From contig PDIP01000093.1 of NCBI GenBank assembly GCA_002811645.1, positions 74,790 through 138,789 of the forward strand: 64,000 nt of DNA, read 5' to 3'. Each line of letters opens with the position of its first letter. Within the stretch, counting starts at the first letter, position 1. The translations under genes and the position numbers were made by a program. Below the pieces are notes generated by a model that was given only the letters and a program-made list of their open reading frames with translations, ran no database searches and was not told the DNA's origin. Of this stretch, positions 1-55,990 are shown in pieces. The DNA comes from Corallochytrium limacisporum Hawaii. Its lineage: Eukaryota > Protista > Pluriformea.

Positions 1-919
1 GTTCAACGTCTGCGACCATGAGGATTGGCAAAAACTCGTCATCATACACGGTACGGATCTTGGTTTTTTCAGGCAGAGGGATCTGCTGGGGTCGTACGTA
101 GTCCCCGATACTCTTGCTGTCATCAACCGGTTGTTCACGCCTTTCGAGCTTAATGCCCCCGCTCGGTTCCAAGTTGTTCGGGGGTAGCTTCAAAACCGTC
201 CGTTGCGTACTAATCTGTTTCATAGCCGTAAACGGAACAGACGCTTGCACGGTCGCTGTCGCTCCCATTTCCTTCAAGCGGCGACGTTCCCGGAGCTCCT
301 CAACATAGAGCCGCTTGCGCTCGAGGGCAGCCTCTCGCTTCTCTTTAACCATGGCGTCGTGGTCCCCCTTGCCACGAGCGGCACTGTTGGCAGCAGTCTC
401 CTTGTGACGCTGGTATTCCATAAGGCCTGCTGCCTGGGCAAAAGATTGATACTCAATGCTCTGAACGGGCACAAAATTCCTGGCCGGCCGATACGGGTTA
501 TGATAGACTTCTGCTGGGTCTTTTGTGAGGATGTAAGGCTCCAGAGGGGCCGGTGCCAAGGGATCCATGTGTGAATCGCGCTGTTTGTGCAACTGATCGA
601 AAAGTAAAAGGTGACTGAAAATGTGTGCTCTCCCATCACTGTATTCTTTTGACGTCCAGATCGCATCTAAGTCACGCGCATTGGGGTCGTTGGCAATGAT
701 AAGGTCCGCATCCTTCCACTTATTCGTGATTCCGATTCTTGATGTGTAGTATGCTTGCCATTCACTGACCCACTTCTCATTAACGTCGGTAGCCACCCAC
801 AAAAAGACTTTCGAGCGTCCTTTCCTAGACTTGCATGGCAAAGGATACGCTCCTTGATCCCGACTTACACTCGTTTGACTGAGACGCGAATATGAGGCGT
901 CAGTTGTCGAACCCGCCAT
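1..919 (-). CDS. TERB2: TERB2-like protein (N-terminal BRCT-like TERB2 domain); runs off the window edge, 3' end not seen
   Basis: Not in the ORF track because there is no stop inside the window. Manual translation from ATG at 919 is open for 306 codons. Residues 41-131 (LWVATDVNEKWVSEW...ADLIIANDPNARDLDAIWTSKEYSDGRAHIFSHLLL...LEPYIL) match my recollection of the human TERB2 N-terminus (GWFCGSVSQDLRQFW...ADFLFSCDASHPDTLRIYQSLDYIEDNATVFHAYYL...LGHFIL). Confidence 0.7.
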   Translation of the reverse strand, partial: MAGSTTDASYSRLSQTSVSRDQGAYPLPCKSRKGRSKVFLWVATDVNEKWVSEWQAYYTSRIGITNKWKDADLIIANDPNARDLDAIWTSKEYSDGRAHIFSHLLLFDQLHKQRDSHMDPLAPAPLEPYILTKDPAEVYHNPYRPARNFVPVQSIEYQSFAQAAGLMEYQRHKETAANSAARGKGDHDAMVKEKREAALERKRLYVEELRERRRLKEMGATATVQASVPFTAMKQISTQRTVLKLPPNNLEPSGGIKLERREQPVDDSKSIGDYVRPQQIPLPEKTKIRTVYDDEFLPILMVADVE

Positions 920-1926
920 AATTATATTTCACTAATGAAGCACGAAAATTTGAATATTGATAAATGCTGTGTGTTTTATGTCCTGTCTTCTGTTACGAAA
1001 CCATAATCTTGACCCGTCTTTGCAATCTGTAGTCACTACGTCTCCGTCTTCTTCGACCCGAAATACGCACTACAGTGTAGGAGAACTTGGTGCACTTAAA
1101 TAAGAATTACACGCATCATCGTATAGACCAACTCAAAAATTCAACACCACAGACGGTTTCGCAGCAATGCATGCCTCTATCCCGCTATCCAATCCGTTCT
1201 TGCCCCAAATGAAGTCATGCCAGTGAAACTAAGGAACCCAAAACCCGCCCAGCCGCCTTCCCCATTGACCAGCATACCTTGCGCTCCACCAAGCGGCTCG
1301 GGTGCGATGAGAGAGAGCGCGCCAAAAAAAAAAAAAAAAACTACAGACAAAAATCTGCTTCGGAGACGGTTTGTAAGGTGCTATTTTATATACGGACATT
1401 TTTAGTTTCATAAACTTCAAACTCACAGGGACGGTTTTTCCGTTTCTCTGGAGGATTCGCAGAACGTGTTCGGAACCGATTCGGACGACAAGCAGAGTCC
1501 GATTTGAGTATTGGATTTGTACTGTGGAAAAGGGGCCGCAGCGCCCAGGCCGGAGAATGTGTATCCTGGACGATTGCGGACAATATGTAAAATTCTGGCT
1601 CCCCGCACCGTTCGTGGCCGGCGGGTCTCACAGAAATTGCAGTTCACTTTGCGTCGGGTGGCAGCCCCCGGTCTCTCGGGGCATTCCCGCCGAAGCCTGA
1701 CACGACCGGCTGGCCCGTTGCTTTGGCTGGTAGTTTCGCATGCATCTCTTGTTTCCTCTGGGATCAAGAGACTCATTAAGCTATCTGTGGACACGCAGAG
1801 GATAGAACGGTGAGTGATATAAGGTTCCCTGCAAGCAGTGCAAGCAGGATTCAGCTAGGAGATCAAGATCAAGTCTCACGTCAGAGGAGAGGAATCCCCG
1901 GGACCTTGGGAGAACATGATTTTCTC

Positions 1927-3747
1927 ATGCGGGTCTGTGGTTTGAGGCACGCGAGGACAAGTGTCTTTCGCACGCTTGCTTCGAGGCTACCTTTAGCAGG
2001 GGCCAAAACTGTGTTTTCTCGTTCTCCTGTGTCGAGATCGCTAGTCGTCTCCAGACCGTTTGGGTCTCGGGCATCCGGAGGTACCAAGATTGGCATCTTC
2101 ACAGGCATCGCGGCCGTTACCGCTGCATCGTTTCTAGTTGTGGGGGCATCCGAGACGATCGGATGCCTTTACATGTATGGTGATAATCGAAATGGCACTA
2201 TTGCAGGGCTTGCCGCTCCGGACGCACGCATGCCGTATAGGGTAACGTTCTTTGACGACAAAGGCTGCAACGCGATCAGCATGTCAGACATGTACAGCGT
2301 GGCAGCGGACTGGAATGGTGATTTGTGGGCCTGGGGCAAAGCTATACCAGGCAGTGATATCGAACAACCTGTAAAATTGGCAAGAAAAAGGAATGGCAAT
2401 GGCAATGGCAATGGCAATGGCGAAGACCATATCGAAGAAGATCAAGTAGAGGACGTAGTAGAGTACGAAACGGCCATGAGAACCGTCTACGTACCTGTCA
2501 GTGTGCTTTCAGGTCAGCATATTGGGCAGGTCAAGGCAACGCATGGCGGAATTTACGGGTTGTCTAACACGAATCGTCTGTTCTTTGTCGGGATTCAGCC
2601 GAACCAGGACGGCACCGTCAACCTAGCAAAGCCAATGGACATTACACCCGACAAGGGAACACACGCGGCACTTGTTCCCGGTGAGAATATTTCAGAGCTC
2701 ACCAGCGGATATCATCACATTGTCCTGCTCACCGATCGCGGCCGTGTCCTGTCAGCACCAACAACCGAAGATGGGAACAATTTTGGACAATTGGGCCAGG
2801 GACACCAGAACAAGGTCCCGCAAAACGAATTTTCGGTTGTTCCAGGCTTCACCGGGGACGTGGTCAAGCAGGTCAGCTGCGGAGCGTACCATTGCATCGC
2901 ACTTACCGGCAGTGGAGAGGCGTACGTCTGGGGCAGCGATCACCAGATGCAATTGGGTCTGGGAAATCCGAACAATTCGGGCAACAAGCCGTACTGCAGG
3001 AACAGGCCGGTCTTTATGAACGGCCTGTGGCAGCAGGGTGCTGATCACGAAGGCCGGGAGATCGCTTTGGTCGAAGCCGGTGACAACAATTCACTCTTCG
3101 TGGTCGATTCAGCAACTGGCACGGAGACCTACACAGTGGGCAATGGACGTACTGGATCCCTTGGTAATGGCATGTGGATCCATATGACGGGCAACCTCAG
3201 TCGAGTCAAGCATTTGAATGATCTTCGCTGGTATGACGAGCAGGAGCGCAAGTCCAAGAATATCAAGGTCTACTCTGTGACATGCGGTGCCAGGCATTGC
3301 GCACTCGCACTTGACACACGATACTCACCAACTGGAGGACTAGATGTCTACAGCTGGGGGTACAACCGGTATGGTCAGTGTGGTAATACCAAACGGGCCA
3401 ACCTTGCAGAACCCGAGTTCTTGCTCGATCCGGAGCGCAAGCGGAAGCATTTGCAACTTAGCCATAAGAAGCGTAGCTATGGCCAGCAGGCAATTCATTG
3501 TTCCAGCAACAACACAGCCATCATTCTGCCACAGAACCTGAATGACATGGAATTCGGGCAGATGAATCCCGCGCACATCAGAAAGAAGATCATGGTCCTG
3601 GAGCACACGCTCAAACAGAGACAGAGCGCACAGTCGGCCCTGAGAGTGCAACATGCCAAACTTCTCAATGACATTCAGGACCAGGTTACGAAAATTGAGG
3701 AAGAAATTGACCGACTGCGCTCCGAAGCATCCAAGAAAGGCGGCTAG
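1927..3747 (+). CDS. Mitochondrial RCC1-repeat protein (RCC1L/WBSCR16- or FMP25-like) with C-terminal coiled coil
   Basis: RCC1 repeats (SGYHHIVLLTDRGRV, NNFGQLGQG, VSCGAYHCIAL, VYSWGYNRYGQCG). Arg/Ser-rich presequence from the first in-frame ATG at 1927, followed by a hydrophobic segment. Confidence 0.8.
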   Translation: MRVCGLRHARTSVFRTLASRLPLAGAKTVFSRSPVSRSLVVSRPFGSRASGGTKIGIFTGIAAVTAASFLVVGASETIGCLYMYGDNRNGTIAGLAAPDARMPYRVTFFDDKGCNAISMSDMYSVAADWNGDLWAWGKAIPGSDIEQPVKLARKRNGNGNGNGNGEDHIEEDQVEDVVEYETAMRTVYVPVSVLSGQHIGQVKATHGGIYGLSNTNRLFFVGIQPNQDGTVNLAKPMDITPDKGTHAALVPGENISELTSGYHHIVLLTDRGRVLSAPTTEDGNNFGQLGQGHQNKVPQNEFSVVPGFTGDVVKQVSCGAYHCIALTGSGEAYVWGSDHQMQLGLGNPNNSGNKPYCRNRPVFMNGLWQQGADHEGREIALVEAGDNNSLFVVDSATGTETYTVGNGRTGSLGNGMWIHMTGNLSRVKHLNDLRWYDEQERKSKNIKVYSVTCGARHCALALDTRYSPTGGLDVYSWGYNRYGQCGNTKRANLAEPEFLLDPERKRKHLQLSHKKRSYGQQAIHCSSNNTAIILPQNLNDMEFGQMNPAHIRKKIMVLEHTLKQRQSAQSALRVQHAKLLNDIQDQVTKIEEEIDRLRSEASKKGG

Positions 3748-5532: not shown

Positions 5533-5799
5533 NNNNNNNNNNNNNNNNNNNNNNNNNNNNNNNNNNNNNNNNNNNNNNNNNNNNNNNNNNNNNNNNNNNN
5601 NNNNNNNNNNNNNNNNNNNNNNNNNNNNNNNNNNNNNNNNNNNNNNNNNNNNNNNNNNNNNNNNNNNNNNNNNNNNNNNNNNNNNNNNNNNNNNNNNNNN
5701 NNNNNNNNNNNNNNNNNNNNNNNNNNNNNNNNNNNNNNNNNNNNNNNNNNNNNNNNNNNNNNNNNNNNNNNNNNNNNNNNNNNNNNNNNNNNNNNNNNN
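5533..5799. other. Assembly gap (N run)
   Basis: Run of N. Confidence 1.
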
Positions 5800-6883: not shown

Positions 6884-7208
6884 NNNNNNNNNNNNNNNNN
6901 NNNNNNNNNNNNNNNNNNNNNNNNNNNNNNNNNNNNNNNNNNNNNNNNNNNNNNNNNNNNNNNNNNNNNNNNNNNNNNNNNNNNNNNNNNNNNNNNNNNN
7001 NNNNNNNNNNNNNNNNNNNNNNNNNNNNNNNNNNNNNNNNNNNNNNNNNNNNNNNNNNNNNNNNNNNNNNNNNNNNNNNNNNNNNNNNNNNNNNNNNNNN
7101 NNNNNNNNNNNNNNNNNNNNNNNNNNNNNNNNNNNNNNNNNNNNNNNNNNNNNNNNNNNNNNNNNNNNNNNNNNNNNNNNNNNNNNNNNNNNNNNNNNNN
7201 NNNNNNNN
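6884..7208. other. Assembly gap (N run) flanked by G-rich and (GGC)n sequence
   Basis: Run of N; GGGGGG tracts on the left, (GGC)7 on the right. Confidence 1.
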
Positions 7209-10927: not shown

Positions 10928-10991
10928 NNNNNNNNNNNNNNNNNNNNNNNNNNNNNNNNNNNNNNNNNNNNNNNNNNNNNNNNNNNNNNNN
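10928..10991. other. Assembly gap; flanks carry a near-identical ~30-bp sequence ending in poly-C
   Basis: ccatttcgc(t/c)cgccggagtttcgcat-Cn occurs on both sides of the N run. Confidence 0.95.
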
Positions 10992-19030: not shown

Positions 19031-19083
19031 CTGTCAGAGCATGACAAAGGAAAATGTTTCCTATACATTTCTCTATATGCTCC

Positions 19084-19530
19084 CTATACAGGAATGCCTG
19101 CCTGCTTGGCCTTGCGCTTGATGACCGTCACTATGCGATCCACCTGGGGATGTGCCGAACAGCGCAGCATAGACAACACTTCGGGACAGACCTACGGCCT
19201 TTCCTTGCCAGCCAGGATCATTTGGAAGGCACCGATACAGGCACCCCGCTTATCCTCCCAGTACTCTGGGTTCCCATCCAGGCGCTCGAGTACATTAAAC
19301 GCTTTGGCGGCAAGGTAGAACTGGCCCATTTTGTAACATGTGTTGGCGATCAGACTAAGCAACGAAAAACTTTCGGTGGAGTGCTCCATGCGCAGGTACA
19401 GATCCCAGGCGCGGCGCGGCTTGCCCATCATGATATGCGCCTTGCCAAGCCAGCCGAGGTATGGGTACGACTTCAAGATTTGCGAATCGGACACCTGCAT
19501 GAAGCCTCTTTCGCACTGCCTCTCCCTCCC
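19084..19530 (-). pseudogene. IFT56: Truncated intraflagellar transport IFT56/TTC26/DYF-13 C-terminal fragment with in-frame stop
   Basis: YLGWLGKAHIMMGKPRRAWDLYLRME...[46 protein letters not shown] matches the IFT56 C-terminus. Homology continues past TAG at 19192-19194 (VCPEVLSMLRCSAHPQVDRIVTVIKRKAK) to a second TAG at 19084. No N-terminal part is visible. Confidence 0.85.
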
Positions 19531-20007
19531 ACTTGAGAGGGAAGAGTTCAGCTGGTCACCAGGGTCGGCAGGGAGCCAGCCCAGGGGCGCAATCCTTCCC
19601 GCCCCCAACGAGTATTTGCTGATTCAAATATTTGCGTAAATATCGTTCATATTTAGTCGCGTATGTCACTGGCTGTCACACGCAACCGGCCCTTGCACAC
19701 CCCCGTCTCTGTGCGGGGAGGGAGCGCTGTTGGGAGCTGAAGGGCGGTGCGGGCCTTTCGGACATAGAGTATGAGGAAGCGGCTTTTGGTTCGCTACACT
19801 TTGCGCAAGGTTCATGATCCCCGCAAAGGTGTGAAAGACCACTTGGTTACCACATTGTCAGTGGTTGTGTGTTCAGTTATGCTTAAATAGATTAGTGCAC
19901 TGTCCAGTGTGAAAAACAACAGGCTGTCTGAAGTAGGTACCCAGTCAGCTTCAGTTTGCCTCTCCCGGGATCACGTTCGTTAGGTTAGTGTCTTGTTTGT
20001 AGTATCC

Positions 20008-21993: not shown

Positions 21994-24900
21994 GTTTGCT
22001 TATTTGTGTTTCTGTGTGTGTAAAAAATTTAACTCTATCGGCGATTCGGTAATAAATTCAGTCGAACTTTCCCTGCATAATACGAACCCGAATAGTTTTT
22101 GTTTTTGGTTTTGAGAAGTGCTCGTTTGTCTGTAAGTGATTTGTGTTTGTTTTTTCTTTAACTATGGATAATTTGATTAATGATATGAAGTTGAGTTTGG
22201 TCGTTGGAAAGATTCAGGTGAACCGACTCCAAAGGCACCACAAACTGCCTAGAGAGCGACCTGAAAAAATGATTTATATAATATAGGGTTGGCTGATCAC
22301 ACAAGGTGATTAACCACAATAAGTTTCAACGTCACAAATACGTTTATAATAAAAGTGATTACTTATTTCAAATAGCTACATAACTCGACAGAAGACTAGC
22401 ATGCCATAATAACAAATGGGGGCTTCAGCTACAATGGAATAAACCAATTTCTTGTCGGTGCATAGAGCGCAAAAAAGTTAAAAATATGGAAACAGCAAAC
22501 AAACGTAAAAATAGTACAGAGAACTTACAAATGGGCAACCCCCCAGCTTGTGCGCTCACCACCCCCTCTACCCCCTGTACTGCAGAAGTACCGAGCTGTG
22601 GAAGAACACTCCCGACCATGTGCTCGAATTTTCTAGTATATTCACTATAGAAAATGGGACCATTGTGGCAGTGACGGGAGCTGTCCATTTCCTGCACCAC
22701 AGGCAGTCGCCACGTACATTAAACCGGTGAGATAGGGGGGAAAGCCAAGACTTTCAAGACGCCCCCCCTTTCCCCCCTCGCTGATTTGACCAGCTACGAC
22801 AAGCACGCCGATAGGTCTCCTGACCAGTTCCCGTGCCGCTCACGTATATGAATTATACGTGTACTTTTTGCCCACTGTCCCCCAATTGTGTTATTTCTAG
22901 TCCATTTCTAACTTCTAACGTGGGTGGATTTGGGGGCCGTGTTCGCTCTCGATTCCTGTCTTTGCAGCCCGGGCCCCGTCCAAGCTTGACTTTCCCTTCT
23001 TCTGTCGCCTAACGTCTTTCCCCAGTTTTTTGTTTGGGGGGTAGCTTTGGTTCCGTGTTATCATACGTAACGAGATGCAAATCCCAATACATTTACTATA
23101 TATGCGGGACCCCCCATGTGACAGAGAACAATCGGGCGACCGTCGTCTGTTCTCTGGGGGAGGGGGGAGGGGGAGGGGGAGGGCAAGCGAGCCGCTGAAG
23201 CTTCAGTGCTCTTTCCCCTCCTGAACGTGTCACCTGGTGCTTGTTCCACACTACCACTGATCCGACGACCGACGGTGCTCACATGGAGGTTTCAACAGCA
23301 ATAGATTCACCATTGAAGTTTGCCCGTTTAGGAGAAGCTTGTGGCAAATTGACGTTTCACCTAGCGAACTGTTTCTGAACGTTACACAGACCACAGACGT
23401 GTAGGCAGAAGAGCGCCGCCCTCCCCCCTACACACGCCCGAGCATTGCCGACCTAAAATGAGGCCCCGTACTGGGTTCAGCTAGTTTTCTATCATATGTT
23501 GATTATGAAGAAAAGGCTGATGATTTCAACCACAGGGTCAACACAGGTCGCCTATTTGCCGCCGCGGTGATGTTGTTTGTCGCTTACTCCTCATCGCCGA
23601 GGCACATCCGCAGATCCCGATCCTGTTCAAGAATCCCATTTTATGGCAACAATCTCCGGTTTATAAAGTATAGAAATTGTATATTTATTGAAAGCACCGA
23701 GGTTGCTTACGTTCACCATCGGTATTCAATTTTGTGCTCTCGTTATCGAAAAAACTCGGAAGACTTACTGTCGTAAGGTCCCGTTTGCGCCGCGATGCTG
23801 GCCTGTTAATTTGTGTTCTGCATAGTCTTTTGTCATACATTTCCACCAATCCTTAACATTTACCGCTGTCGGTTCATAGTCTTCTCGCGCTGCTGATATG
23901 ACCGGTGCTGGCACTGTGGAGAGACAGGAGGTATCTTGAAACCGATTTCTTCTGAACGTCAGTAAAGGTTTGGCATATACATTGAGGAACACACCGGCAG
24001 CCTTCGAAAGTTGGCAGCCCGAAAAAAATCTTTTTATCTGTTGTGCAACAGCAAAGAGAAGCAATTTACAATAGCTGTCAGCATTCATTCTAAGGGAGGG
24101 GCGGGATGTGTCTGATTATTGAAACGTGTTTTCTTGGTCGCTCTAAATCACACTGACCGTACCTTAATGTTGCTATATGTCTTCGCCACGAGGCGCGATT
24201 GCAGGTCGGACAAACCAGCGGAATTTTCCATGACTCGCCCGATACTGCGGAACTAATAAATACACACAAACTGTCCCTGGCTAAGCAAGATTGATAGTTT
24301 AAGAAAGCTACCGCACCTCGGGGAAGCAGGGATAACGACCATAAATTTTCGCGGCAATTGATGTCGCTGCTTGCTCGGAAGCGACCAATCATTGGATCCA
24401 GTGTCCAATAGCACACACCCACTTGTCCGCACATAGGGTTGTCTGATTCATAGGTAAACGTGCAGACCATGCCATAGTCTTTGTTACAAGAGGCTTATAT
24501 GCTTGGGGTGATCATGGCCTAATATCACTCCAGAATGCATTAGGCGAATATTACACACCCTCAAAGTTTAATTTATGGGGGTCAGACGCATAAATGATGT
24601 AGCTACCTTCACAGGCGTCTCATGACTATGTGAATGAGTGGGAAAATAATAGGAATGACACACTGTATTGCAATACTTTCTGTGTCAATTTGAGTCTACG
24701 CCCTCCACAGCAATGCCGTTCGAGCTAACTTTTTGAAACAAATGTACGGGACGGTGAAGCGATCTGGGAAGAAAATTTCTTCACCTTCCTGGACCCCAAC
24801 AGGTTTGGATTCTCAGCAGTCGAATTGTTGGATGCACGGCGGCCCTAAGTCCTGCCCTTTGGGACCGAGGTCTTGGGAAAGTTGTTGCAAAAAATTCTCC

Positions 24901-27900
24901 GAAAATTCTTCTTTGTGCCCACCTGCGTTCAACGAGTTTAGCTAGTCTTTCGCACCTGTGTCGTTGCATGTGGAGAGGGCGGGAGGAAAACGCCCATCGG
25001 CCTTCTCGTCGTTGTACCAGACCTTGTCCTATAGTAAGGCAACGAAAGTTCTCGGAATTCTCTTTGGCTTTCCTTCCATTGTCGGTGTCTCCGTTGGAGA
25101 CACGACAAGCGCCCAACCGAAAAGAAAAGTACGAAACGAATGGAGGCGACGTTGGTTCGAATCCCGGGGCCAGAGCGCATAATTGGGTAAACCCGCCCTG
25201 GGCCATCCCTCTCCCACCCCTCCACAAGCCGCTTGCGCCTGCCACAGCTTCGCTCGTTAGACGAGCAATATACCAAAAGCGGCTGCTGACTAGGTGGACT
25301 CTGTCGGTTCGACACGGAAGCCTTCTGTTTTCTTCTTCCGTATGCGTTTCCGTTCCATTGACCCAGGTGCTCCCTCACGGGTCTGGAGACTGAATGAGGT
25401 CAATAGTAGAGACGTCCGTGCTTGTTCACAAATTGAGTTGTGGGGTCGGCCGACCAGTCTACCACGACACGATTCGCAGGCACGCGAGTGGGGCGGTTCC
25501 ACCGTGTGCACTGTGTCATTCGTCTGTGGGATGAGACTCGAACCCACACGATCTACAGAGGAACGGAGCAATCCGCAGCGACAGATCCATAATGAACCCA
25601 CCTGCACCTTTGACTGTGTTCAACGTTTTGGGCCCTTTGTGAGGGAAGGCCCCACTCATCGCTTGGGAAGGTGATCCCACACTCGAGTCCTCCGGGCGGA
25701 ACAGAGAACAAATGCGAAGGAGGAAACGATAATCACCACAGTAGCCATGAACCCTTACGGTAGGAATGTATGGGTGCACCAGGTGTCCACGGCACGTAAA
25801 CTTTGGATGTCAGGGCGGCACAGGGTCAAGTGTATGAAATGTGACAATTGTCCCGCAAGCCGTGTTGTGTTTGCGATGAACAGTCATGCAGAGCATGTTG
25901 TGCAAAGCTTGCTAGGCGATCTTCGAAGTTTCAGATATTTTCATTTTCGAACACTTCAAGGACCACTCCGGCTCGAGCCGAACACTTTCGAACGAATTCA
26001 CCAGTATTCTTGTGGTCGTACAAAGATCTTCGCTACTCGACCCGTCGATTGGGTTAGTTTCTCTGCAGGTGTGGGCAACTAGTAAACAAACTGTTCAGAC
26101 TGAGCGTTCTTGTGAACCTAGTTGGGGTGTATCTCGACCAGGCGTGGAAAAGAGAGGAGGGGTGTGGGTGTGGAACGGCAGGACTTGGCGTGTTCAAGAC
26201 GTGGGTTCCTGCTCGCCTCTGCAACGTGAACGTACGGATTCGCGTGATGGCTTGCACTTTCATTATATTTGAATGCGGGATGCAAGATATCGCAAAAGAT
26301 CCGACCGACGCCACTGGGAGACGATAAGGAAACCAGGTGATATCTGAGCAATTGTCCTCTCGCATTGAATTAGTTTCCGTTTTCTTTAGCCCGATCGGGC
26401 AGCACGCGCGCTGGGAGTACTACTTCGGCTCAGGTGTTTAGTGACCCAGGAAAGGTAGTGACAGATTTGACGTAGAATCGCAGACGTTTGTGTTATCGTG
26501 TAACCAACCGTCAACGTCACCGAACCCGTGCTTTTTGGGTCGGAAAATCCATAGTAATAGCCAGCAGCTCCCGAAAATATGGATGAAGATTATCTACAAA
26601 CGTAGAAGGGTCAGTACACGTATCGCATAAAATTACCTTCTCGTCCAAAGGATAAGAACTAGGTTCAGTTTGATCAGATGGTTGCAAGTTTTCCAAAGTG
26701 GAAAAGTTTCCAAGCCTTGGGGCCATATTTTATCAACCACTACCCAGATTTCGAGCATGTGCTTTTAAGGATCTCCTTATCAACAACCGCGGTCCACTAA
26801 CGGTCACTGAGTACGTATGAAAGTGATAATTGCCAACGATCAGCGTGACTGGATGTCGAGCGTTTAGTAGATAGCCGGGGTACTAACAGAGGCGAATATT
26901 GTAAGTCTGTGGACTGCTTTCATTTTCTCGCATAAATGAGTGTCAGAAACTTGTCCGCGGTGAGTGGACGTAGGGGTGTATCCACACCCGAGGGTGTCCT
27001 CCACGGCAGGCCATGTTGGCACGTTCTGATTGGTCGAAAATTATTTGTTCAATATTAGATTTTCTAACTTTATACTGCCTCCCTTTCTCAACTTGTAACT
27101 TACCCAATTCAGAAGGTCTTGATTATCAGCAGGCGCGGGTAATTGATCTCTCCCGTTTTTCATCGCCTGGGCTCCCGATCCTTTTGTTCCCCAACGAAGT
27201 GTGTGAGAGAGTCGGTGATGTTGTGGATGGTGACGATTTTCACCAAGGAGACTTCTACCTACCATACCAATTTTTACGCCAAGACGCAAGTTGTAGGTCG
27301 CAAGAAACAAATAAATTTAGCCTGAGGTCGAGGCTTAAAGAAACTTGTGAGCAAGTCGAGGTATGTGCCCCCAAACTGCTACGACCTCGGCGCTTGTTTT
27401 AAGCAACGGGAGACTGCTACGCACCCTCGCTGCACGCTGGTTCGCGCTGTGACAAAAGTAAAGCCCCTCCGGACCTTCTGGTGCCTAACGGTGGCGGCAA
27501 GATGTTCTTCTGTCTCACTGTCACGGAGCAAGTACGCACGGGCAAGGAGTACCGTGCGATTCAAAACGCTGTAGAACTATTCTGTGAAACTTGACACAGG
27601 GAACTTTGAACGAATAGACAAAGGATCAGGAATAGGAAGAAGTATGTGAATTTCAGAGGGACACACGATACGGAGATCACTTGAGAGACCAGCGACATTT
27701 CATCGAAGGGTTCCATATCCCATCAGTGTTTCGTGAAGGTGTTAGAAAAAGTTCCCTAATATGGGTACGTTGAAAGAAGGATTGAGCGCATGACAATCAA
27801 GATGTGAAAAAACAGGGAACGCTGGAAAAGGGGAGGGCACACTCGAGTGCAGAGGACGGAAAGGGAGGGAGCCCTGGAACGTGTAGTGTTTGGCAATTTT

Positions 27901-30900
27901 GATGAGGTTCAAGAGACGCGATGAGGGGCGCCACAAAGGAGGAGGAACAAGCAATCCCCGCACTCAAGAGGAACGAAGAGTCCACTGTCCGTCGCCCGTT
28001 GTGGGTTTTTAGAAATTGGCGCGCATTTGCAAATTTTGTCCGTTGGCGTCGCGGTGCACCATGTGCTCAAACTGATCTCTATACTGAAAGTATTGAGTTG
28101 CTCTGAAATTGTTACGGGCTTCTGCAACTGTTTGAGATGTTGGGTGTGGAAAAACATCATTAACATTTCGCGCGTTTTCTTCACCTAGCTGGGACTGCTA
28201 CAGCACCTGCTTTTTTGCTTGTCTTACTGCCTGTGAATTTGTGGTTGTTTGAGATAGTATTGACAAGAGCTCTCCCTCCAGCCCTCAATGTGTGGAATAA
28301 AGCCTGTCGCAGTGTTCGTCCCTGATCTGCAATTTGCTTGCGGGGTGTGGAAATGTGGTAGTGGAGAAGGCTTGGGGAAAGGAACGGGCACAGACAGTCA
28401 GAGATAAGGAAGAAACCGAGCATGCACCGTAGGGATTCGCGCACACGGACCGTCGCATCAGGGTGACTTAGTGAAAAAATATTGCTGAGAGGACTTTCTC
28501 CTTCTATATCCAATATAGAAAATATGAAAAAGGAAAGACCAAACATATTGTTGACCATTGTTGGATTACAAGTGGGAATTTCTAAAGAGAAGCGGAAAGT
28601 AACCTTCAGATCACACACACACAGAGAATGAAGAGCGATAAGAATCACTGGTTTGTGTACTCGTTTATCGCCGCTTGTGTGCGCGGCAAAGGTCCCTTTC
28701 AAGCAAGTTTAACATGGTGGCCGTGTGTGAGATGAAGCAAATTCCATTGAATCACAGTGGGCTTTGGGATTGTATGAATACGAACTATGAGAGAAGTGCC
28801 AACACAACTAAGACAAGTGTTGATCAATTCTTTGTGTTGAACATGTCACCTGCATAGGATACAGCGGTTCTGGGTGCAGCATGAGCAGAAAGTAGCAGTA
28901 GAAACATATAGTAAGTTGAGTCACGCCTCGCCGGATCTCATTGTCGCTCGTTCCGATGTTCGATGTCTTGGGGTTGAAAGAAGGTGAAAACATCAACCAC
29001 ACTTTCATAGATAGCTCTCCGATGAATCCGTTTACATAATCGCTGTATGTTGCCGTACACCAAGTGTTTCCCACACATACGAAATACGTGTCTGCGAAGT
29101 TTGTCACCACTCAGTTCGCCTTTCGGAGCTGAGTACCTTGACCAACAGAGTGCTATTCAGGAAAGGTGACTTGAGCATATGAATGTACGCATAAAACACT
29201 GAAATCGTTTTAGGTAAGTTCCCACCTACCTCGGTTCCTTGCTGTCAAGTTCAGTCACAGGGGTATCGAAACATCGAGGCTTTTTATCGGAAATAATGTC
29301 GATCAGTGATTACTGAGCAAGATGTCACGGAAATCCAATAATTGTATTTTTTTGCCATGTTTGGCACATCTAATAATATTTGTTGGTAATTGTTTGTTTG
29401 GGGGAATTCATCATGGGTTAGAAAAAATAGGAAAAACATCATTTGTGTTATCTGTTGAAGCTCGCTTGTCAGATCCGTAGAAGAAAATATGGGCTGAGTA
29501 GAGAAGACGTTTATCGACCTCTGGGAGGTTTTCATCAACCCACATATCAGAACTACAGACACACTAATTCTTTTCCCCAAGCAACTCCCGATCTTTCCGT
29601 CAAATGAATAGTATAGACCCGAAATCTGACACGTAGAATACATATGACTCCCCCCAAATTTACCTGAGTGCGGAGAATAATTCTTTTGAGGGGTGAGACG
29701 CCAACATGCGGAAGTGATCGTTCGAAAAGTGAGACAGTGAGAAACGGGGAAAGGTCGCTTTTCCTTCGCACACGCCGAGGCCAAAGATTCTTTCAGTCGC
29801 TACCACTAAAATCATTGCCTACTGTCTTAATATGAAATGAACTGGCATGAAGGATTGCCGTCTGGACCTTCATCTTTTGCAGCACCATGTGGCCTGTAGT
29901 CTGCGTTGCCGGCCCACAAGAAAATATAACAGGAGCGGGCGGGCGGCATACGTGTTCCTCCACCTGACGGGATGGTAGACCTAATAAAGAAAAACTGTAT
30001 GCACTCTGGATGGGGTGGCAGACTTGTGCGTGTGGTCGTCCGTCTGCTTAGCCAACCACGAGTTGGTAGTTCACAGCGTGGAAAATTGCGGTTTTTTAGC
30101 TATGGATCGATCTCCGGGAAGCGGACACACTTGAGAACGGCCGATTGTTTTTCAATGTACTATGCGCATTATGAAAATCACACATCTGGCAGACCACCTC
30201 CTGACACTCCAGTGTTGACAAGATGTTACAGCTCCAGGAACGATCCAGGGCGCCGATATGTCAGCTGGCACAGTACCTCTCCGATGTGTTTTGAACAGAG
30301 TATGTCATGTGTGGAACATGACACGTCTCTGCGCATATGGCCATGTTTAGCAGACAACCCTGTTCTTCCTTTGTTCCGCCAAGGACCCGTCCTTTTCATC
30401 ACTTTGTTCCACTGCAAGAACTCTATTGCGCTATCAATCACGGCCGTACCCGCTCCTGACAGGTCCCTGATGTTTGTGTCCTCCCGTCCATCCCATAGTG
30501 CTTGTATGTCCAAATTGCTGTCGCTCTAGGTACACACTCCTTTTTGGTGACGAATCAAGGACACCGATCGCTGATAAAAACGAAACAGAGACATAGCAGG
30601 GAGTACCCTCCTGGGTTGTCTTTTTGTTGCAAAACAAACGGGCTTGGTTCGGACAGCTGCTGCCCACTGCGCTTTATTCTCATCAGCTCTGCTCCACCCC
30701 TGGCTCCCCTTCCATGCGCCTAATGGTTCTGCCAACGAGATACGTGTCTCCTCCTCCCCGCCCCCCTCCCCCCCTCTCCCCCTCTTGGGGGACCCTTTCC
30801 CCCCCCCCTCGCCTTATAGTGTCCCAGTCCGTCCCCGGCCTCTGCTCCGATTCCTTTGTTCCCGAACAAACATCTTCAGCACCCTCCAACACCAAACCCT

Positions 30901-43644: not shown

Positions 43645-45669
43645 ATGGAGCACACCTGGAGATTCTTCAAGGAGCGAAAGAGGCCCATCAATCCCCTCGG
43701 TTCCACAAAAGAACTGGACAAGGAAGATCCCAACAGAACATGTGCGACCTGTGATGAAGCCTTGGTAGGAAAGATCTGTACCTGCATTGACTGCGGCAGT
43801 GTCCACCATCACACTTGTCATGATCGTAAGGGGAAAGAATGCAAGAAATTCCGTTGCGCAGAATGCTACAATAAGAGCAAACCTCATTTTGAAACATTCA
43901 AGGTAAAGAACATTAACTTCCACTCTTACCAGGGATCTCGGGGAGATGTTGTGGGCTCTAGGGCCTCCGTTTCCGCTGTCGCATCAACGCGCACTTCATT
44001 GCCTCCAATGGAGTCTCTGCAAAACGTTTTCAACTACAAAAAGATGGCCAAGGAACTGAAGCGTAAGCCCAAGGGACCTGAGGCACAATTCATTGCCAAA
44101 TTCCGTGCAGATGGCGGTGAGGCAAAGAAGCGGCCAAGTATGCCCCCATTGGTTGACCGGGATAAAGAGTTTGAATACGTCTTTGAGCGGAATGGCGACG
44201 ACGACGACGACAAGCCTCTGACTCGAGCATCGATGCCTGCGGCTGCCATGCGAAGTCAATTTGAAAGACTCAAGGATGTTGACCTGGAGAGCAGAAGCAG
44301 TTCTGCCGCGGCACCGAGCAAGAGCAGTGAGAAAGAAAAGGAATCAAAGGATAAGGAACCCGAAGAGAGTAATTCTCCTGCTCCTGCCCCTCCTGTGGCC
44401 GCACCTGTCAAGGAAGCCAGCGGAAAGGACAAAGAAAAGGACTCAGAGAAACCAGAGAAGAAGGAGGAATCAAAGAAGGAAAAGACCAACACAAGGACCT
44501 CTGCCATTTTCACATGGAACCACATTCAATCCACAGAAGTTACCCAGCGAGGTGGCAATGAGAACCCGACCTACCAGCCTGTAAAGAAGGCGAAGCCCAC
44601 CAAGGATAAGGACGCAGGAAAGAGTGGAGACAAAGAACATAAAGCAGACGCTGCAGCAAGGGCTGCCGCCGCTGCTCTGGCAGGAGTCACTGCTTCTGCA
44701 CCCCAGAGTCAGGCCCCGGGGCCTCCTGCACAAGCCCCCGCAGAGGGTCGGGAAAAGCGGCCGAAGAAGGCCACCGAAAACGGCGATCAAGCGTCAACGA
44801 AAAAGCGCAAAACGGCCGATGCTCAGCGTCAGTCAGGGGCCCCGTATGGTGGCGCACCGCCTCTCCCACACTATGCTGCCTACTACGGTCATCCTCCGCC
44901 ACCCCCGCCTGGCCAGGGTGGGGATCAGGATCAGTCACACCCCCCACAGTACCATGGCCACCAGTACCCGGGGCACTACCCTCCGCCTCCACCACCCCCC
45001 AGTGGTGATCAGAACAATGGCGCACCTCAAGAGCAGCGCGGTAGCATCCCTTACTATGCACCTGGCCCGGGCCCGGAGGGTTACTACCCACCTGGCGCTC
45101 CTCCTCCGCCTGGCCAAGAAGGTCACGCACACTACAACGGACAGGCTCCGCCTCAGGGTGACCAACGTGGTACGGGACCGCCACCTCCATATGGCTACTA
45201 CCCTGGGTACGACTACAATCGGATGTACCACGATTACTACTATGGGTATTACTACCGGGGACAAGATCAGCAGCAACAAGACACTCGAAGCAGTTCCGAT
45301 GACCGGTCAAAATACCCCCATCCGCCTCCACCCCCGGCCGATGGGCGCGGTTACCCGCCGCCACCTCCGGGTCATCATCCACCGCCACCTCCACCAGGAC
45401 AGTACCCGGGGGCACCACCAAACAGTCACCCTGCTGCACCACCGCCGGGACAATACCCACCACCTGTTCCCACGGCTGCAAACGGTGGCAGTGAAGAAGG
45501 CCAACAACAAGCACCGCCCCCTGGTGCGTGGCCTCCACCGCCTCCCCACTATCAATACTACTACGGCTACTACGGGCATCCACCACCACCACCGCAGCAG
45601 CAACAACAGCAAACACAGCAGGCCAACAGTGATCACCAAGCTTCCGGCGATGCCAGGCGCAGGTCGTGA
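43645..45669 (+). CDS. PHD-finger protein with long Pro/Tyr/Gly/Gln-rich low-complexity tail
   Basis: CATC...CIDC...H--C...CAEC (C4HC3); charged middle with NLS-like KKRK; PPPP/YYG-rich C-terminus. Confidence 0.75.
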   Translation: MEHTWRFFKERKRPINPLGSTKELDKEDPNRTCATCDEALVGKICTCIDCGSVHHHTCHDRKGKECKKFRCAECYNKSKPHFETFKVKNINFHSYQGSRGDVVGSRASVSAVASTRTSLPPMESLQNVFNYKKMAKELKRKPKGPEAQFIAKFRADGGEAKKRPSMPPLVDRDKEFEYVFERNGDDDDDKPLTRASMPAAAMRSQFERLKDVDLESRSSSAAAPSKSSEKEKESKDKEPEESNSPAPAPPVAAPVKEASGKDKEKDSEKPEKKEESKKEKTNTRTSAIFTWNHIQSTEVTQRGGNENPTYQPVKKAKPTKDKDAGKSGDKEHKADAAARAAAAALAGVTASAPQSQAPGPPAQAPAEGREKRPKKATENGDQASTKKRKTADAQRQSGAPYGGAPPLPHYAAYYGHPPPPPPGQGGDQDQSHPPQYHGHQYPGHYPPPPPPPSGDQNNGAPQEQRGSIPYYAPGPGPEGYYPPGAPPPPGQEGHAHYNGQAPPQGDQRGTGPPPPYGYYPGYDYNRMYHDYYYGYYYRGQDQQQQDTRSSSDDRSKYPHPPPPPADGRGYPPPPPGHHPPPPPPGQYPGAPPNSHPAAPPPGQYPPPVPTAANGGSEEGQQQAPPPGAWPPPPPHYQYYYGYYGHPPPPPQQQQQQTQQANSDHQASGDARRRS

Positions 45670-47008: not shown

Positions 47009-47648
47009 ATTGCGAGTCCATTTACGGCACCATTTATTTCTGTACCACACTTCTAGAGTTCACCCCTGTTCGCTCTTAAATCCGCTCCGTCACTTATATT
47101 TGACAGATGAAGGTACAGATCAGTGTGTAACACTCGTGCAACATGGTTTGAATAGTTTTCCGCGGTGGTCTTCTTCGGAGCCGTTTGCCGCGGGCCAGTA
47201 TAGAGGCCGTCCGTGGCTAGACCATCCCTGGCGGGGCGGCGACACGCGGGTCCCGCCGGCAAGCCCTCTGGGACCGTTCGCGGCCCCCCCCCAACTCTTC
47301 TCCGGGTCCTGAACCACCTCGCCCAAGTTAAGTCCGCAGATGCGTGATTACGGGATCTTTCCTCTTTGGGGAGAGCCAGGGGGATTTAAGACTCCCTTTC
47401 GGTGAGGCGGAAGTTGGCCGCAGCGGGTCCCATGACCACCGGATAGGTCTGACGTGTCAGTTCCGTCTTACACAGTCCACATGTCGCGGCCTCCATTTAT
47501 TTGCTTTGTCTGGGACACCAGAGGTACCTAAGGATGTTCGGGGCATAAAAGTATTGAGAGCAGCGTGGGCTAAGCCCATAGGTCAGGTAAAGAATCTTGG
47601 TATAAGCCTTTGTGCCCCATCCCATTTGGCAATCCCGCTTGCAACACA

Positions 47649-49535
47649 ATGGGTGGTCCAGGGACAAGGAAAGCCGCTTGGCTGCAACTATTGAATTTCG
47701 CCGTAGTGTGCCTTGTGTTGCTTTCTGGTGCTGCAGCAGGACAGGACGGAAAGACGAAGCAGCAGCAGAAACGTAGTCGTCCCGCCAACCTATGGGATGC
47801 GAGCCAGTCTTTTGAAATGCGAGTATATATCAGTAGTAGTCCCGAATTCAAAACGGAAGACTGGGTTTCACAGGACAAGGACTTTGCGGGCGGTAAGTAT
47901 GCATATACACCAGAGGGCCCTCTGAGTTGGGACATTAAAAATGATACTGAGTCTGATGAGAACGTCGAGATACCGCCGATTCCGGAGGTAGGATATGATC
48001 TCGAAAGCATTGACGAGAATGGACAGATCCTGGTGGCAAAGCTCACGGATCTGGAGTATCAGACGCCATTTGAAGAGTACATTCATCTACGTTTGAAGTT
48101 AAATGACGGTGCCCAGAAAAATGGCACTTTGTATGCTCACGTGGTATCCAGCAAGACTAACCACGAGATTCATCCGCACAACTCCGGGTGGAAGAGCACC
48201 AATGCGCAAATTTTGACATCACCTTTGGTACGATACAAGCATCTTCGGTCTGGGCCAAAACTCAAAAACTTATTATCGGGTGCGGCTAACAAAACAATGG
48301 AGAACGGGACTATTGTCGAGCAGACTCCAGAGGAAGAGGAAGACTACAATCCGATTCTGAGTCACTGGCACAACAACCTGACCATCGCCTACGTTGAGGA
48401 CCCAAATCAGAACACACTTCCTCAGCTTTCACCCACCATGAGGAAGAATTTGACTTGGAACCGTACGGCTGGCGGATATATGCCGCTGGTATGGCGTAAC
48501 GAGTTTTGGACCTTCAAGGAGGACATGAAGCCTATCAATAGCACTGTACTTGAGGTAGACCTCTACATATGCGCTTACCACCTTTCCATCTGGCATTGGC
48601 AAATGATGGTCTCTATGGACGAGAGCTTTGGACTGCACCACGAGTGGGGAACCATGAACGAGGATGAACCGGAAGAATTCAAACGGATGCTACTGGACAC
48701 AGATCCATGGCTGTTGGGTATCACTTTCGTCGTTTCAATTTTGCATACGATCTTTGACTTCTTGGCATTCAAGAACGATATTCAGTACTGGCGGAAACGA
48801 AAGACTGTCAAAGGAATTTCCGTTCGGACGTTGTTCACCAACCTTGGCATGCAGGTCATTATTTTCCTCTACCTCCTGGACAATGACACCTCATATTTAA
48901 TTCTAATGTCCAACTTTGTCGGGTTATTCATCGACTTTTGGAAGGCTGGAAAGGCGGCCAACATCTCTCTAGACTACCAAAACAAGTACTTTGGTATCAT
49001 TCCTGCTGTTAGAGTAGAGGACCACGCATCCTACGCGAAATCTAAGACAAAGGAGTTTGATGATTTAGCCTTCTCATACTTGAGCTACGCCTTGTACCCG
49101 ATCGTCGTGATTTACTCCGTCTACAGCTTGATGTACAACGAGCACAAGAGCTGGTACTCCTTCATCTTGAACACCGTTGTCGGCATCATCTACATGTTTG
49201 GTTTCATCATGATGACTCCCCAATTGTTCATCAATTACAAGTTGAAATCGGTGGCTCATCTGCCATGGCGCATGTTGACGTATCGTGCGTTGAACACATT
49301 CATTGATGATCTTTTCGCATTCATCATCAAGATGCCTTTGTTACATCGTCTGGCCTGCTTCAGAGACGACCTCATCTTCTTCATCTATCTCTATCAGCGG
49401 TACATCTATCCTGTGGACCCCAACCGTCGATTTGACGAAGATGATGGAACGCAAGAACCAAGTGAGGCTAGTGAGGGCAAACCACTGCTCCAGAACGGCG
49501 AGAAACAGCCTGCAGAGTCAAAGAAGGACAAATGA
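47649..49535 (+). CDS. CLPTM1: CLPTM1-family multipass membrane protein (lipid scramblase family)
   Basis: VSILHTIFDFLAFKNDIQYW, FGFIMMTPQLFINYKLKSVAHLPWR-LTYRALNTFIDDLFAFIIKMP, YLYQRYIYPVD. Confidence 0.95.
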   Translation: MGGPGTRKAAWLQLLNFAVVCLVLLSGAAAGQDGKTKQQQKRSRPANLWDASQSFEMRVYISSSPEFKTEDWVSQDKDFAGGKYAYTPEGPLSWDIKNDTESDENVEIPPIPEVGYDLESIDENGQILVAKLTDLEYQTPFEEYIHLRLKLNDGAQKNGTLYAHVVSSKTNHEIHPHNSGWKSTNAQILTSPLVRYKHLRSGPKLKNLLSGAANKTMENGTIVEQTPEEEEDYNPILSHWHNNLTIAYVEDPNQNTLPQLSPTMRKNLTWNRTAGGYMPLVWRNEFWTFKEDMKPINSTVLEVDLYICAYHLSIWHWQMMVSMDESFGLHHEWGTMNEDEPEEFKRMLLDTDPWLLGITFVVSILHTIFDFLAFKNDIQYWRKRKTVKGISVRTLFTNLGMQVIIFLYLLDNDTSYLILMSNFVGLFIDFWKAGKAANISLDYQNKYFGIIPAVRVEDHASYAKSKTKEFDDLAFSYLSYALYPIVVIYSVYSLMYNEHKSWYSFILNTVVGIIYMFGFIMMTPQLFINYKLKSVAHLPWRMLTYRALNTFIDDLFAFIIKMPLLHRLACFRDDLIFFIYLYQRYIYPVDPNRRFDEDDGTQEPSEASEGKPLLQNGEKQPAESKKDK

Positions 49536-53119: not shown

Positions 53120-55990
53120 TCAATTGTCAATAACACCTAGAGCGAACTCCTCAGCCACGACCTCGAACTTGTTACGAGCGCCTTCGATCTGCTTCAGGAA
53201 GCGCTCTTGCTCAGCCTCATGGTGGTCATCGCCGGATCTGCCTGGTTGGCCGCTCAGACTTGACATGTTCAGCAGTCGCTGATACTCCTCATCGCACTGC
53301 ATACAGACCGGGTTGTCCTCATTCAGACAACGATCATGGTAAGAGTGCCCGCAAAGGAAATGTACCACAGGAAGTTCCAGGGGCAGACGACAAGCTTTGC
53401 ACTTGCCGAGGTGGAAAGTTTTTGCCTTGGTCTGTAAGTCTTCGAGCTGAGTCTCCAGATCCCGGTTTTTCTCTGCCAATTCACGGATGGTCTCCTCGTC
53501 AGAGGCAAGACGACCGTTGCTGTCATTGAACCAGCGCAAGAGGAAGTCCCTCACCACAGTGATGCTAATATTTGGTGCCTTGATCAATAGTTTGACCATT
53601 TGGAACGGAGTCATAGTTTCCTGCCGTTCAATGGTGACCAGCATCTCTGAAATGATTGCATTTGCATCCGCTGGTTCCTCAATGTTGGTGGAAAAATGTG
53701 TAAGGGCCTTGCTCCACAGCGACAAGTCCTGTGCGCCATACCGCGTACAGGTCCTCAGGATTGCCTCCGTGTCCCGCAGGCGAATGTGAAGATCCAAAAT
53801 CTGAGAGTACATGTGGTTTGTCTCCAGCAAATAGATAAGCCCCTCGCTAAAGTCGTTCTGTCCACAGATGAGAAGTGCCTGGTTCGGGTCATAGGCACAG
53901 TCTTCGTCCTTCAGTAACTTCAGTGCCTCTGCTTGCCGCTCTTTCTTTTCTGACTTTGATCCTGCGATATCAGGGCGCAGGTAAAGCTCCAGCAGAACGT
54001 TGACCACAGGCGCGTAGTGCCGGTGGTTGGCAGCGTGAACTGTCTCGGCAAAGGTCAAGAACTGTGCTGCGTGCTTGACAAAGACGTGGAAGAACTCTTC
54101 TGGTTTTGCACGCTTCCCATTCTCCTGAATCAGCAGCTCCGCTTCGTGACGTTTGGAGAAAGGAATGGCATACTGCAGATCCTCGCTGATCTCGGTGGGA
54201 CCAGGCCAAGTGGAGCAGAGGTCGATAAGAATCTTCACAGTCTGTTCTTCATCTTGCTCGATCAGAAAGACACCGTGGATTCGCAAAAAGTATGCGGCAA
54301 TCTGCAGAGGAAGGCTCTGCAGGTATTCGAGCGCCTTGGACCCTTCCTTCAGGTCGTAGACGGATATGGTAATGAACCAGTCGACATTGTGGAAGCGCCT
54401 CGCCACATTCAGTGCCAGGGACAGGAATCCACTATTACGCAAGGCTTTGATCGCACTATTCACGTCGAAGCTTGGGTACGTTTGCGTTGTTTGCTTGGCT
54501 CCATGCTCGTCCTCACCACCTGTCTTCGTTGTGGTCAGAAACCCTTCCAGTTGTTCCGCCTTACCGAGGCGTGTGTAGCACTGCAGCAGCAGTGTCGTGT
54601 GTGTCGGTCCCGCGGCGCTCTTGTCGTGGAGGACCTGCAGGTATTGGATCAACGGTTCTAGAGCCTGGATGTCAAGATACTTCTTGATCACGTAAGATGG
54701 TTCCAAGACACCGATTGTCTTTGTGTACTGGATCATGGCACCTTCGGTGTCTCCCTTTGAATACAAATAATCACCGTACTGCTTGAATACTTCGTAAACT
54801 GCTTGTGTGTCGTAATTCTGGCTTGACGATGCCAATTCAATTGCCAATGGATACAAAGACTTCTTGAATAGAATGTTTAGCTTGGTTTGCGTGTCCTGTT
54901 CATCCAATTGCATCATAATACCACTGCTATTGATAATGTGCAGGAAACCCCATTCCTTTACGATGAAGGCAATGTCATCGAACTTGCTCTGATAGGCGAC
55001 ATATTTCCGATTGATGTCGTAGATGGTGAGGACATTTCTTCCGCTGCCTTCGCGCGCCCCCAGCATGGATCCGCTTGACAGCTTCCCATCCACTGTTGCC
55101 AACACCAGATAGTCTCGAAACCAGGCTACCGAACGCTTGGTGCCATCAAACGCAAAACAAGGACCCAACCCATCGACGTTGTAGAAGAAGACGGCCTCCT
55201 TGCGAGCCACGATCAGGTCATTTTCGTTGAAGACGCCCTCTGCCAGCGTGGTGCACTGCATCTCTGCGCCTGACATGTCGAGTGTTTCGTACTGTACATT
55301 GTTGCGACCGCGAATCGTGAGGACTCCGGTTTCCGATTCTGTGGTAATGTAGAGATAGACGGTGCTCTGCGAATTGTTGACCGGTCCACGCCGGATAGTG
55401 ACAAATTTCAGCGATGTAATCTTGTCTCCGGGCTGGCTAAAAACGACTGACTTACTCGGGTTCCTTTCGCGTAGAATGTTGCCAAGGATCAGCACTACAT
55501 GACCATCATCGTAGCCTAGGGCTGTCATGGAGGCAGTGGCTGTGCAAGCAAAGCAGACTACTTGCCCTCTCCCTTCCTTCAGTTTGTCTACCCGGAACGA
55601 ACGCACCAACTGAGGGGCGTGACCGTCCTCAGGCTGCGCATCCGCAAAGTCCCAGGCCTTGAGATACTTGTGGTTATGCCCTCCTGGTGCCTCAACGTCC
55701 TCAATATCTCCTTCCAGCGTGACAAGTGTGTGAGATTGTTGCAGTGCAAACATTGAGAGAATCGGGTTTTCGTGTGCCTGTACGGACACGCATTCAAAGG
55801 ATCTGTTAAGAGTGTGCAGAGTGCCATAGTTGTCTCCCAATGCGAGGAACCCAGACGTGCCTGCAGCTGCAGTGAATCTGGCTCCCTGTGTCGTCTGACA
55901 AACAGTGTGCAACTGTAAACTTGCATCTGTCCTGGACAGAGCCTTTGGTTCAAAGAAATTGAACTTGCGCCACTGGCTTAGCGCGGGCAT
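53120..55990 (-). CDS. VPS11: HOPS/CORVET subunit Vps11
   Basis: WRKFNFF N-terminus, beta-propeller, YGDYLYSKGD...Y-KTIG-LEPSYVIKKYLD, HTTLLL-CY, RING C--C--PLELP-VHFLCGHSYH--C. Confidence 0.96.
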   Translation of the reverse strand: MPALSQWRKFNFFEPKALSRTDASLQLHTVCQTTQGARFTAAAGTSGFLALGDNYGTLHTLNRSFECVSVQAHENPILSMFALQQSHTLVTLEGDIEDVEAPGGHNHKYLKAWDFADAQPEDGHAPQLVRSFRVDKLKEGRGQVVCFACTATASMTALGYDDGHVVLILGNILRERNPSKSVVFSQPGDKITSLKFVTIRRGPVNNSQSTVYLYITTESETGVLTIRGRNNVQYETLDMSGAEMQCTTLAEGVFNENDLIVARKEAVFFYNVDGLGPCFAFDGTKRSVAWFRDYLVLATVDGKLSSGSMLGAREGSGRNVLTIYDINRKYVAYQSKFDDIAFIVKEWGFLHIINSSGIMMQLDEQDTQTKLNILFKKSLYPLAIELASSSQNYDTQAVYEVFKQYGDYLYSKGDTEGAMIQYTKTIGVLEPSYVIKKYLDIQALEPLIQYLQVLHDKSAAGPTHTTLLLQCYTRLGKAEQLEGFLTTTKTGGEDEHGAKQTTQTYPSFDVNSAIKALRNSGFLSLALNVARRFHNVDWFITISVYDLKEGSKALEYLQSLPLQIAAYFLRIHGVFLIEQDEEQTVKILIDLCSTWPGPTEISEDLQYAIPFSKRHEAELLIQENGKRAKPEEFFHVFVKHAAQFLTFAETVHAANHRHYAPVVNVLLELYLRPDIAGSKSEKKERQAEALKLLKDEDCAYDPNQALLICGQNDFSEGLIYLLETNHMYSQILDLHIRLRDTEAILRTCTRYGAQDLSLWSKALTHFSTNIEEPADANAIISEMLVTIERQETMTPFQMVKLLIKAPNISITVVRDFLLRWFNDSNGRLASDEETIRELAEKNRDLETQLEDLQTKAKTFHLGKCKACRLPLELPVVHFLCGHSYHDRCLNEDNPVCMQCDEEYQRLLNMSSLSGQPGRSGDDHHEAEQERFLKQIEGARNKFEVVAEEFALGVIDN

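Follow-up and report, generated by a model that had tools for sequence, protein, structure and literature searches.

A putative remote TERB2-like protein encoded by a single-exon gene of a probable non-animal opisthokont

The window, by which we mean the whole 64-kb stretch of DNA that was analysed, begins inside a gene on the minus strand. From the ATG at 919..917 the frame extends through 306 codons, none of them a stop, to base 1, and the remaining 19 codons and the stop codon lie beyond that base. The complete product of 325 aa, referred to here as P0001, is present in the protein collection that was searched, with EukProt as its sole source, where it is a predicted protein without a Pfam label. 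The first-pass annotation had described an ORF that leaves the window from position 919 (minus strand) and is missing from the list of ORFs; the frame is indeed present and open to base 1, and its absence from the list arises because the listing program skips ORFs that cross an end, but the gene is not ‘hidden’, as it had been called, since EukProt already holds its protein. Scored against the codon usage of twelve confident neighbouring genes, the coding sequence gives +0.27 bits per codon in frame versus -0.28 and -0.46 out of frame, which falls inside the range of the neighbouring genes. The ORF is a genuine single-exon gene. It stands head to head with a gene encoding an RCC1-like protein, and the divergent intergenic region is presumed to be a promoter region shared by the two (Table 1). 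The RCC1-like protein is extended at its N-terminus, carries a (Gly-Asn)5 run, for which the DNA has five copies of AATGGC, and ends in a coiled-coil-like tail.

Approximately 25 long single-exon eukaryotic genes are found in the 64 kb, with a gene spacing of ~2.6 kb, and include Timeless, VPS11, CLPTM1, TAF6, the DNA polymerase alpha B subunit, Fip1, COX11 and a STAM-like gene. The window is essentially intron-free, in agreement with the intronless genome that had been proposed at first reading. The intron-free genes and their spacing, the occurrence of the proteins in EukProt alone and the lack of any Corallochytrium entry among the matches, where sister data sets of the same study do occur, would fit Corallochytrium limacisporum as the host; the genome of Corallochytrium is reported to comprise 24.1 Mb and 7535 genes, at an intron density of 0.0 per kb of coding sequence (PMC5560861). 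Rfam and tRNA scans of the window returned nothing. Three runs of N mark scaffold gaps, and the overlapping ORFs around the second gap are artefacts of reading through it. A segment of ~9 kb with no ORF longer than 175 aa, no Pfam match among the ORFs tested and a lower GC content (0.44-0.50) is a gene-poor or lineage-specific stretch inside the dense window. Elsewhere a 674-aa ORF with 16% proline, without a Pfam family and with a strong AT skew of 0.24 is accompanied by long overlapping ORFs in other frames; its N-terminus is Cys/His-rich and zinc-finger-like by eye. A 160-aa ORF matches the Pfam family ‘Chromosome_seg’ (chromosome segregation during meiosis) at chance level (E 0.24, 12 bits).

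Table 1. Positions of the features discussed, numbered from the first base of the window
Feature	Position	Strand	Basis or remark
P0001 coding sequence, codons 1-306 of 325	1..919	-	Open translation, EukProt product and codon usage
Start of hydrophobic C-terminal tail, aa 286-306 of 286-325	2..64	-	D-D-E-F-L-P at 26..43
PP2C-resembling stretch, aa 268-299	23..118	-	16/32 identical to plant clade-A PP2C
Long charged helix, aa 160-219	263..442	-	AlphaFold2 pLDDT 63-94 over aa 170-220, below 50 elsewhere
TERB2-like N-terminal domain (candidate), aa 41-134 versus PF15101 profile 7-90 of 207	518..799	-	21.6-23.4 bits, E 6.5e-5 to 2.4e-4
Y-I-L-T-K, aa 129-133, at the place of [F/Y]xLxP, Pro missing	521..535	-	Pattern search
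Core block, aa 64-106 versus profile 26-68, equal length, 43 residues	602..730	-	Bulk of the TERB2 score
Tyr93 codon, at the place of human TERB2 Tyr56 (TERB1 contact)	641..643	-	Inferred from the block register
Basic patch KSRKGRSK, aa 30-37	809..832	-	Translation
Divergent intergenic region, P0001 gene/RCC1-like gene, 890 bp	920..1809		A17 tract at 1324-1340
RCC1-like gene	1810..3747	+	AATGGC x5 at 2392..2421
Scaffold gap	5533..5799		267 N
Overlapping ORFs	~6650-7420		Artefacts of the second gap
Scaffold gap	6884..7208		325 N
Scaffold gap	10928..10991		64 N
160-aa ORF	19054..19536	+	‘Chromosome_seg’, chance level
Gene-poor or lineage-specific stretch	22000..30900		~9 kb
674-aa ORF	43645..45669	+	
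CLPTM1	47610..49535	+	End branch 0.94 versus median 0.54
VPS11	53120..56008	-	End branch 2.0 versus median 0.35

In animals, TERB2 sits between TERB1 and MAJIN as the middle subunit of their meiotic telomere complex. When P0001 was searched against all of Pfam, TERB2 (PF15101) was the sole family at E ≤ 10. The match is sub-threshold [21.6-23.4 bits against the curated gathering cut-off of 27 bits], with 21.6-21.8 bits for the whole protein of 306 or 325 aa (E 2.0e-4 to 2.4e-4), 22.5 bits for aa 1-150 (E 1.2e-4), 23.4 bits for aa 30-140 (E 6.5e-5), 21.2 bits for aa 36-112 (E 3e-4), 19.5 bits for aa 66-140 (E 1e-3) and 19.3 bits for aa 60-112 (E 1.2e-3). In all five of these pieces PF15101 was again the sole family at E ≤ 10, and the profile coordinates were co-linear. 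The core block, which is without compositional bias, provides ~19 of the 23 bits, and the flanks contribute two to four bits. The two halves aa 36-88 and aa 86-140, each searched alone, gave no Pfam match.

The first-pass annotation had proposed a TERB2-like gene at 527..799 from a W-x4-V-x7-W spacing (aa 41-54), a 36-residue block (aa 71-106, window 602..709) and the string LEPYIL (aa 126-131). All three are found in the ORF, the core block encloses the 36-residue block, and the interval corresponds to aa 41-131, nearly the envelope of the Pfam match. The family was thus recovered independently over the same residues, although the score stays below 27 bits and comes mostly from one block of 43 residues. 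Among ~50 other ORFs or pieces of ORFs from the window that were run against Pfam as controls, none had an isolated match better than E 0.08. A phmmer search of PDB chains with aa 30-140 gave none at E ≤ 10, although the PDB includes the N-terminal domain of human TERB2 according to the published account, and TERB2 was not recovered by PDB sequence searches with the whole of P0001, with aa 30-140 or with the tail. The profile score being far above any single-sequence score fits matches that are concentrated on columns conserved in the family. At the profile level the resemblance of P0001 to TERB2 exceeds chance, and it constitutes one weak line of evidence from sequence.

The register of the block is set by a string that we take to be human TERB2, and in this register Y93 would take the place of Tyr56, E92 and D95 would correspond to Asp55 and Glu58, and Asp59 would be replaced by G96. 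The string agrees with the published numbering of Asp55, Tyr56, Glu58 and Asp59 (PMC6361898) and with that of the F/YxLxP motif, aa 86-90 (PMC7227075). In TERB2, Tyr56 and the acidic cluster of Asp55, Glu58 and Asp59 are the residues that contact TERB1, and a change of Tyr56 to Glu abolishes TERB1 binding (PMC6361898). All TERB2 proteins of animals are reported to carry the [F/Y]xLxP motif (PMC7227075). The corresponding stretch of P0001 lacks the proline (Table 1), and a pattern search for [FY]xLxP across the whole protein found zero occurrences.

Outside the domain, the first 40 residues of P0001 are basic (7 K+R versus 2 D+E) and contain a patch that, by eye, looks like a nuclear localization signal. 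The long charged helix, the one region in which AlphaFold2 is confident, may form a coiled coil or a single helix within a linker. No transmembrane segment is present; among 19-residue stretches, hydrophobicity is highest in the one beginning at aa 296, and F296 in D-D-E-F-L-P lies 29 residues before the C-terminus. By eye, aa 286-325 recall the region of Phe192 in TERB2 that binds MAJIN and can be regarded as a candidate partner-binding tail. A C-terminal MAJIN-binding motif, for which an extended ORF was to be inspected according to the first-pass annotation, was detected by profile nowhere in the 325-aa product; the C-terminal pieces aa 141-325, 230-325, 270-325 and 280-325 gave no Pfam match, PF15101 included.

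An exhaustive phmmer search over 1.84 billion representative proteins returned, besides P0001 itself, only two artefacts of repeat proteins (one with LRRs, the other 3390 aa long), a word-indexed protein search returned P0001 alone, and a metagenome scan returned no relative. Neither the P0001 gene nor VPS11 had a record when looked up by exact match in assemblies. Because no homologues were found, no alignment or profile of P0001 could be built. Prediction by AlphaFold2 without an alignment reached a pLDDT of 43 for the whole of P0001 and 38 for the domain alone, too low for a fold comparison. The N-terminal domain of TERB2 folds as a three-stranded sheet with six helices (PMC6361898). Among the scanned ORFs of the 64-kb window there was no match to TERB1 or MAJIN.

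These negative results give appreciable weight to the possibility that the resemblance is fortuitous. P0001 would then be a lineage-specific orphan, unrelated to TERB2 by descent, whose N-terminus is disordered and which has in addition a small alpha/beta region and a helix of the coiled-coil type, and the Pfam match would be a sub-threshold false positive, enriched because the region had been pre-selected by eye. A score that lies under the gathering cut-off and derives essentially from one block is what such a match would look like, and the failure of protein and metagenome searches to find a homologue points the same way, as do the two TERB2 motifs that are broken or undetected ([F/Y]xLxP and the C-terminal MAJIN-binding motif). 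The C-terminal tail, too, resembles an unrelated stretch of PP2C equally well by eye. The E-values of 6.5e-5 to 2.4e-4, however, refer to a search of the whole library, the block shows no compositional bias, and the window controls did no better than E 0.08. It also speaks against coincidence that the family matched comes from a likely sister lineage of the host (see below) and that the matched region is the expected domain and lies where a TERB2 protein would have it.

It is very unlikely that the N-terminal region is a generic alpha/beta module, BRCT-like or of another common kind, to which TERB2 happens to be the closest named profile. The low-confidence AlphaFold models do alternate strands and helices in the N-terminal region, but neither BRCT nor any other family was found in Pfam at E ≤ 10 with the whole protein or with any piece, nor was any PDB chain at E ≤ 10 with aa 30-140, and a generic BRCT family, which had been named at first reading as the competing assignment, is not preferred over TERB2.

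A derivation of P0001 from a decayed PP2C phosphatase, or from a fusion with a PP2C fragment, is more improbable still. It is suggested by aa 268-299, where half of the residues are identical to the ‘SRSIGD...PE...DD.L’ region of plant clade-A PP2C (e.g. 3nmv_B), yet even in a search of a set as small as the PDB the E-value is 0.1-0.9, there is no match to the PP2C profile of Pfam, the other 270 residues are without PP2C motifs and 32 residues cannot form a PP2C fold. The match is not significant and probably due to chance, and a PP2C origin of the C-terminus was rejected. This stretch overlaps the start of the tail, and its likeness to PP2C shows how little short resemblances in the tail mean.

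The host was placed with two genes of the window. Over its conserved core CLPTM1 has 56-60% identity to everything, and its best match is the ichthyosporean Amoebidium. The best matches of VPS11 are animals, at 33-34%, followed by Capsaspora, Pigoraptor, Chromosphaera and Ichthyophonus. Both genes have very long end branches (Table 1); the lineage is, by these sequences, fast-evolving and without a close relative in the collections searched. In the VPS11 tree a clade of animals (99/100) leaves the window sequence outside, a clade with fungi has an AU p of 0.31 and placement inside eumetazoans an AU p of 0.075. A two-gene tree of 10 taxa recovers Opisthokonta (98/97) and draws the window to Mortierellomycota (90/92), with Holozoa not rejected (AU 0.096). 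In a 30-taxon supermatrix analysed under a site-heterogeneous model the window falls inside Holozoa (SH-aLRT 95), beside Amoebidium (97), while a grouping with fungi survives the AU test (0.24). The single-gene and 10-taxon trees, computed with LG+G4, either gave no resolution or drew the long branch towards fungi, and more weight is placed on the 30-taxon tree. Judged from these trees the host is most likely a non-animal opisthokont, with Holozoa favoured and a fungal-side placement retaining AU p 0.24-0.31. The unicellular holozoan host of the first-pass annotation is borne out as far as exclusion from animals (99/100) and the best-sampled tree are concerned, but less firmly so against the fungal side. 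An animal origin of the scaffold, by contamination or otherwise, which would make the gene an ordinary divergent animal TERB2, is hardly credible: the highest-scoring VPS11 matches are animals and the position inside eumetazoans is not formally rejected by the AU test, but the animal clade excludes the window sequence, ~25 long single-exon genes lie in 64 kb, the best identity to any animal is 33-47% and the window proteins occur only in the protist collection of EukProt.

We favour, with moderate confidence, the reading that P0001 is a soluble, probably nuclear, remote TERB2-like adaptor in a fast-evolving non-animal opisthokont, likeliest a unicellular holozoan. From the N- to the C-terminus it would consist of the basic patch, a domain of ~95 residues (aa 41-134) remotely related to the N-terminal domain of TERB2, a charged helical linker and the hydrophobic tail. 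By analogy with animal TERB2 such a protein would have two working ends; the N-terminal domain would grip a helical motif in a partner that is bound at chromosome ends or telomeres, and the hydrophobic tail would dock onto a partner at the nuclear envelope. The gene, its layout and the profile match are observed; that the domain is homologous, that the two ends bind such partners and that meiosis is involved are inferences.

Several observations are counted in favour of the TERB2-like reading. In the block register Y93, E92 and D95 would occupy places of residues that contact TERB1, and the arrangement of an N-terminal domain, no transmembrane segment and a hydrophobic tail is the plan of TERB2 (PMC6361898). 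In a lineage that evolves as fast as the VPS11 and CLPTM1 branches indicate, a weak match is what is expected of a true homologue, and the placement in Holozoa makes the host coherent with a protein of an animal family. The coding region of Hydra Terb2 is 1780 bp, so that TERB2 varies in length and 325 aa is within the range of the family. Counted against this reading are the score below the cut-off, its origin in a single block, the lack of relatives, the broken [F/Y]xLxP motif and the tail without a profile match. With the score below the gathering value and [F/Y]xLxP absent, membership of the TERB2 family is not established.

Comparison with animal TERB2 shows both likenesses and differences. 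P0001 has TERB2 as its sole matching profile, over the N-terminal TERB1-binding domain, a tyrosine flanked by acidic residues at the putative place of Tyr56, a flexible middle and, as a soluble protein, a hydrophobic C-terminal tail. Unlike TERB2, it has an N-terminal extension of 40 residues and a linker of ~150 residues with a long charged helix, scores below the cut-off, has [F/Y]xLxP without its proline and a MAJIN-binding motif that is undetected by profile, and belongs to a host that is probably not an animal.

Small meiosis-specific adaptors that connect telomeres to the envelope are also found in fission yeast (Bqt1-Bqt2, with Bqt3-Bqt4) and in budding yeast (Ndj1). The job proposed for P0001 would be the same, namely to link, in an opisthokont outside the animals, a protein of the telomere with a partner that belongs to the nuclear envelope or has a SUN domain, but P0001 shows none of these Pfam families at E ≤ 10 and no sequence similarity to these adaptors was seen. 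Yeast and mouse adaptors have no common sequence similarity (PMC7227075). In C. elegans, MJL-1 is a MAJIN-like envelope protein (PMC9908027). It is an example of a strongly diverged component that resembles those of the telomere complex and was recognised late, so that very weak similarity would be normal for the system; unlike P0001, which is without a transmembrane segment, MJL-1 is the membrane partner and not an adaptor of the TERB2 type.

A published PSI-BLAST survey found TERB2 in animals only, back to sponges and placozoans, and dated TERB1-TERB2-MAJIN to the common ancestor of animals (PMC7227075). In our literature search no paper was found that pairs TERB2 with choanoflagellates or MAJIN with Holozoa. 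The stronger proposition, in which P0001 is a true orthologue of TERB2, its host an early-branching unicellular holozoan, probably Corallochytrium, and the tether as old as the root of Holozoa or older instead of dating from the first animals, appears rather unlikely on the present sequences, and cryptic meiosis in the host lineage, which had been hinted at initially, is speculation.

If the match is due to chance, the P0001 gene is one of many lineage-specific orphans. If the TERB2-like reading is true, the origin of the tether would shift to before multicellularity, and, were P0001 a true orthologue and the host on the fungal side, it would move back to the opisthokont ancestor. The gene would provide a concrete marker for seeking meiosis in a lineage without a known sexual cycle, and, on the orthologue reading, an organism without described sex would keep machinery for the attachment of chromosome ends in meiosis. 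It would also be a small, intron-free gene with which to test how the tether worked before animals.
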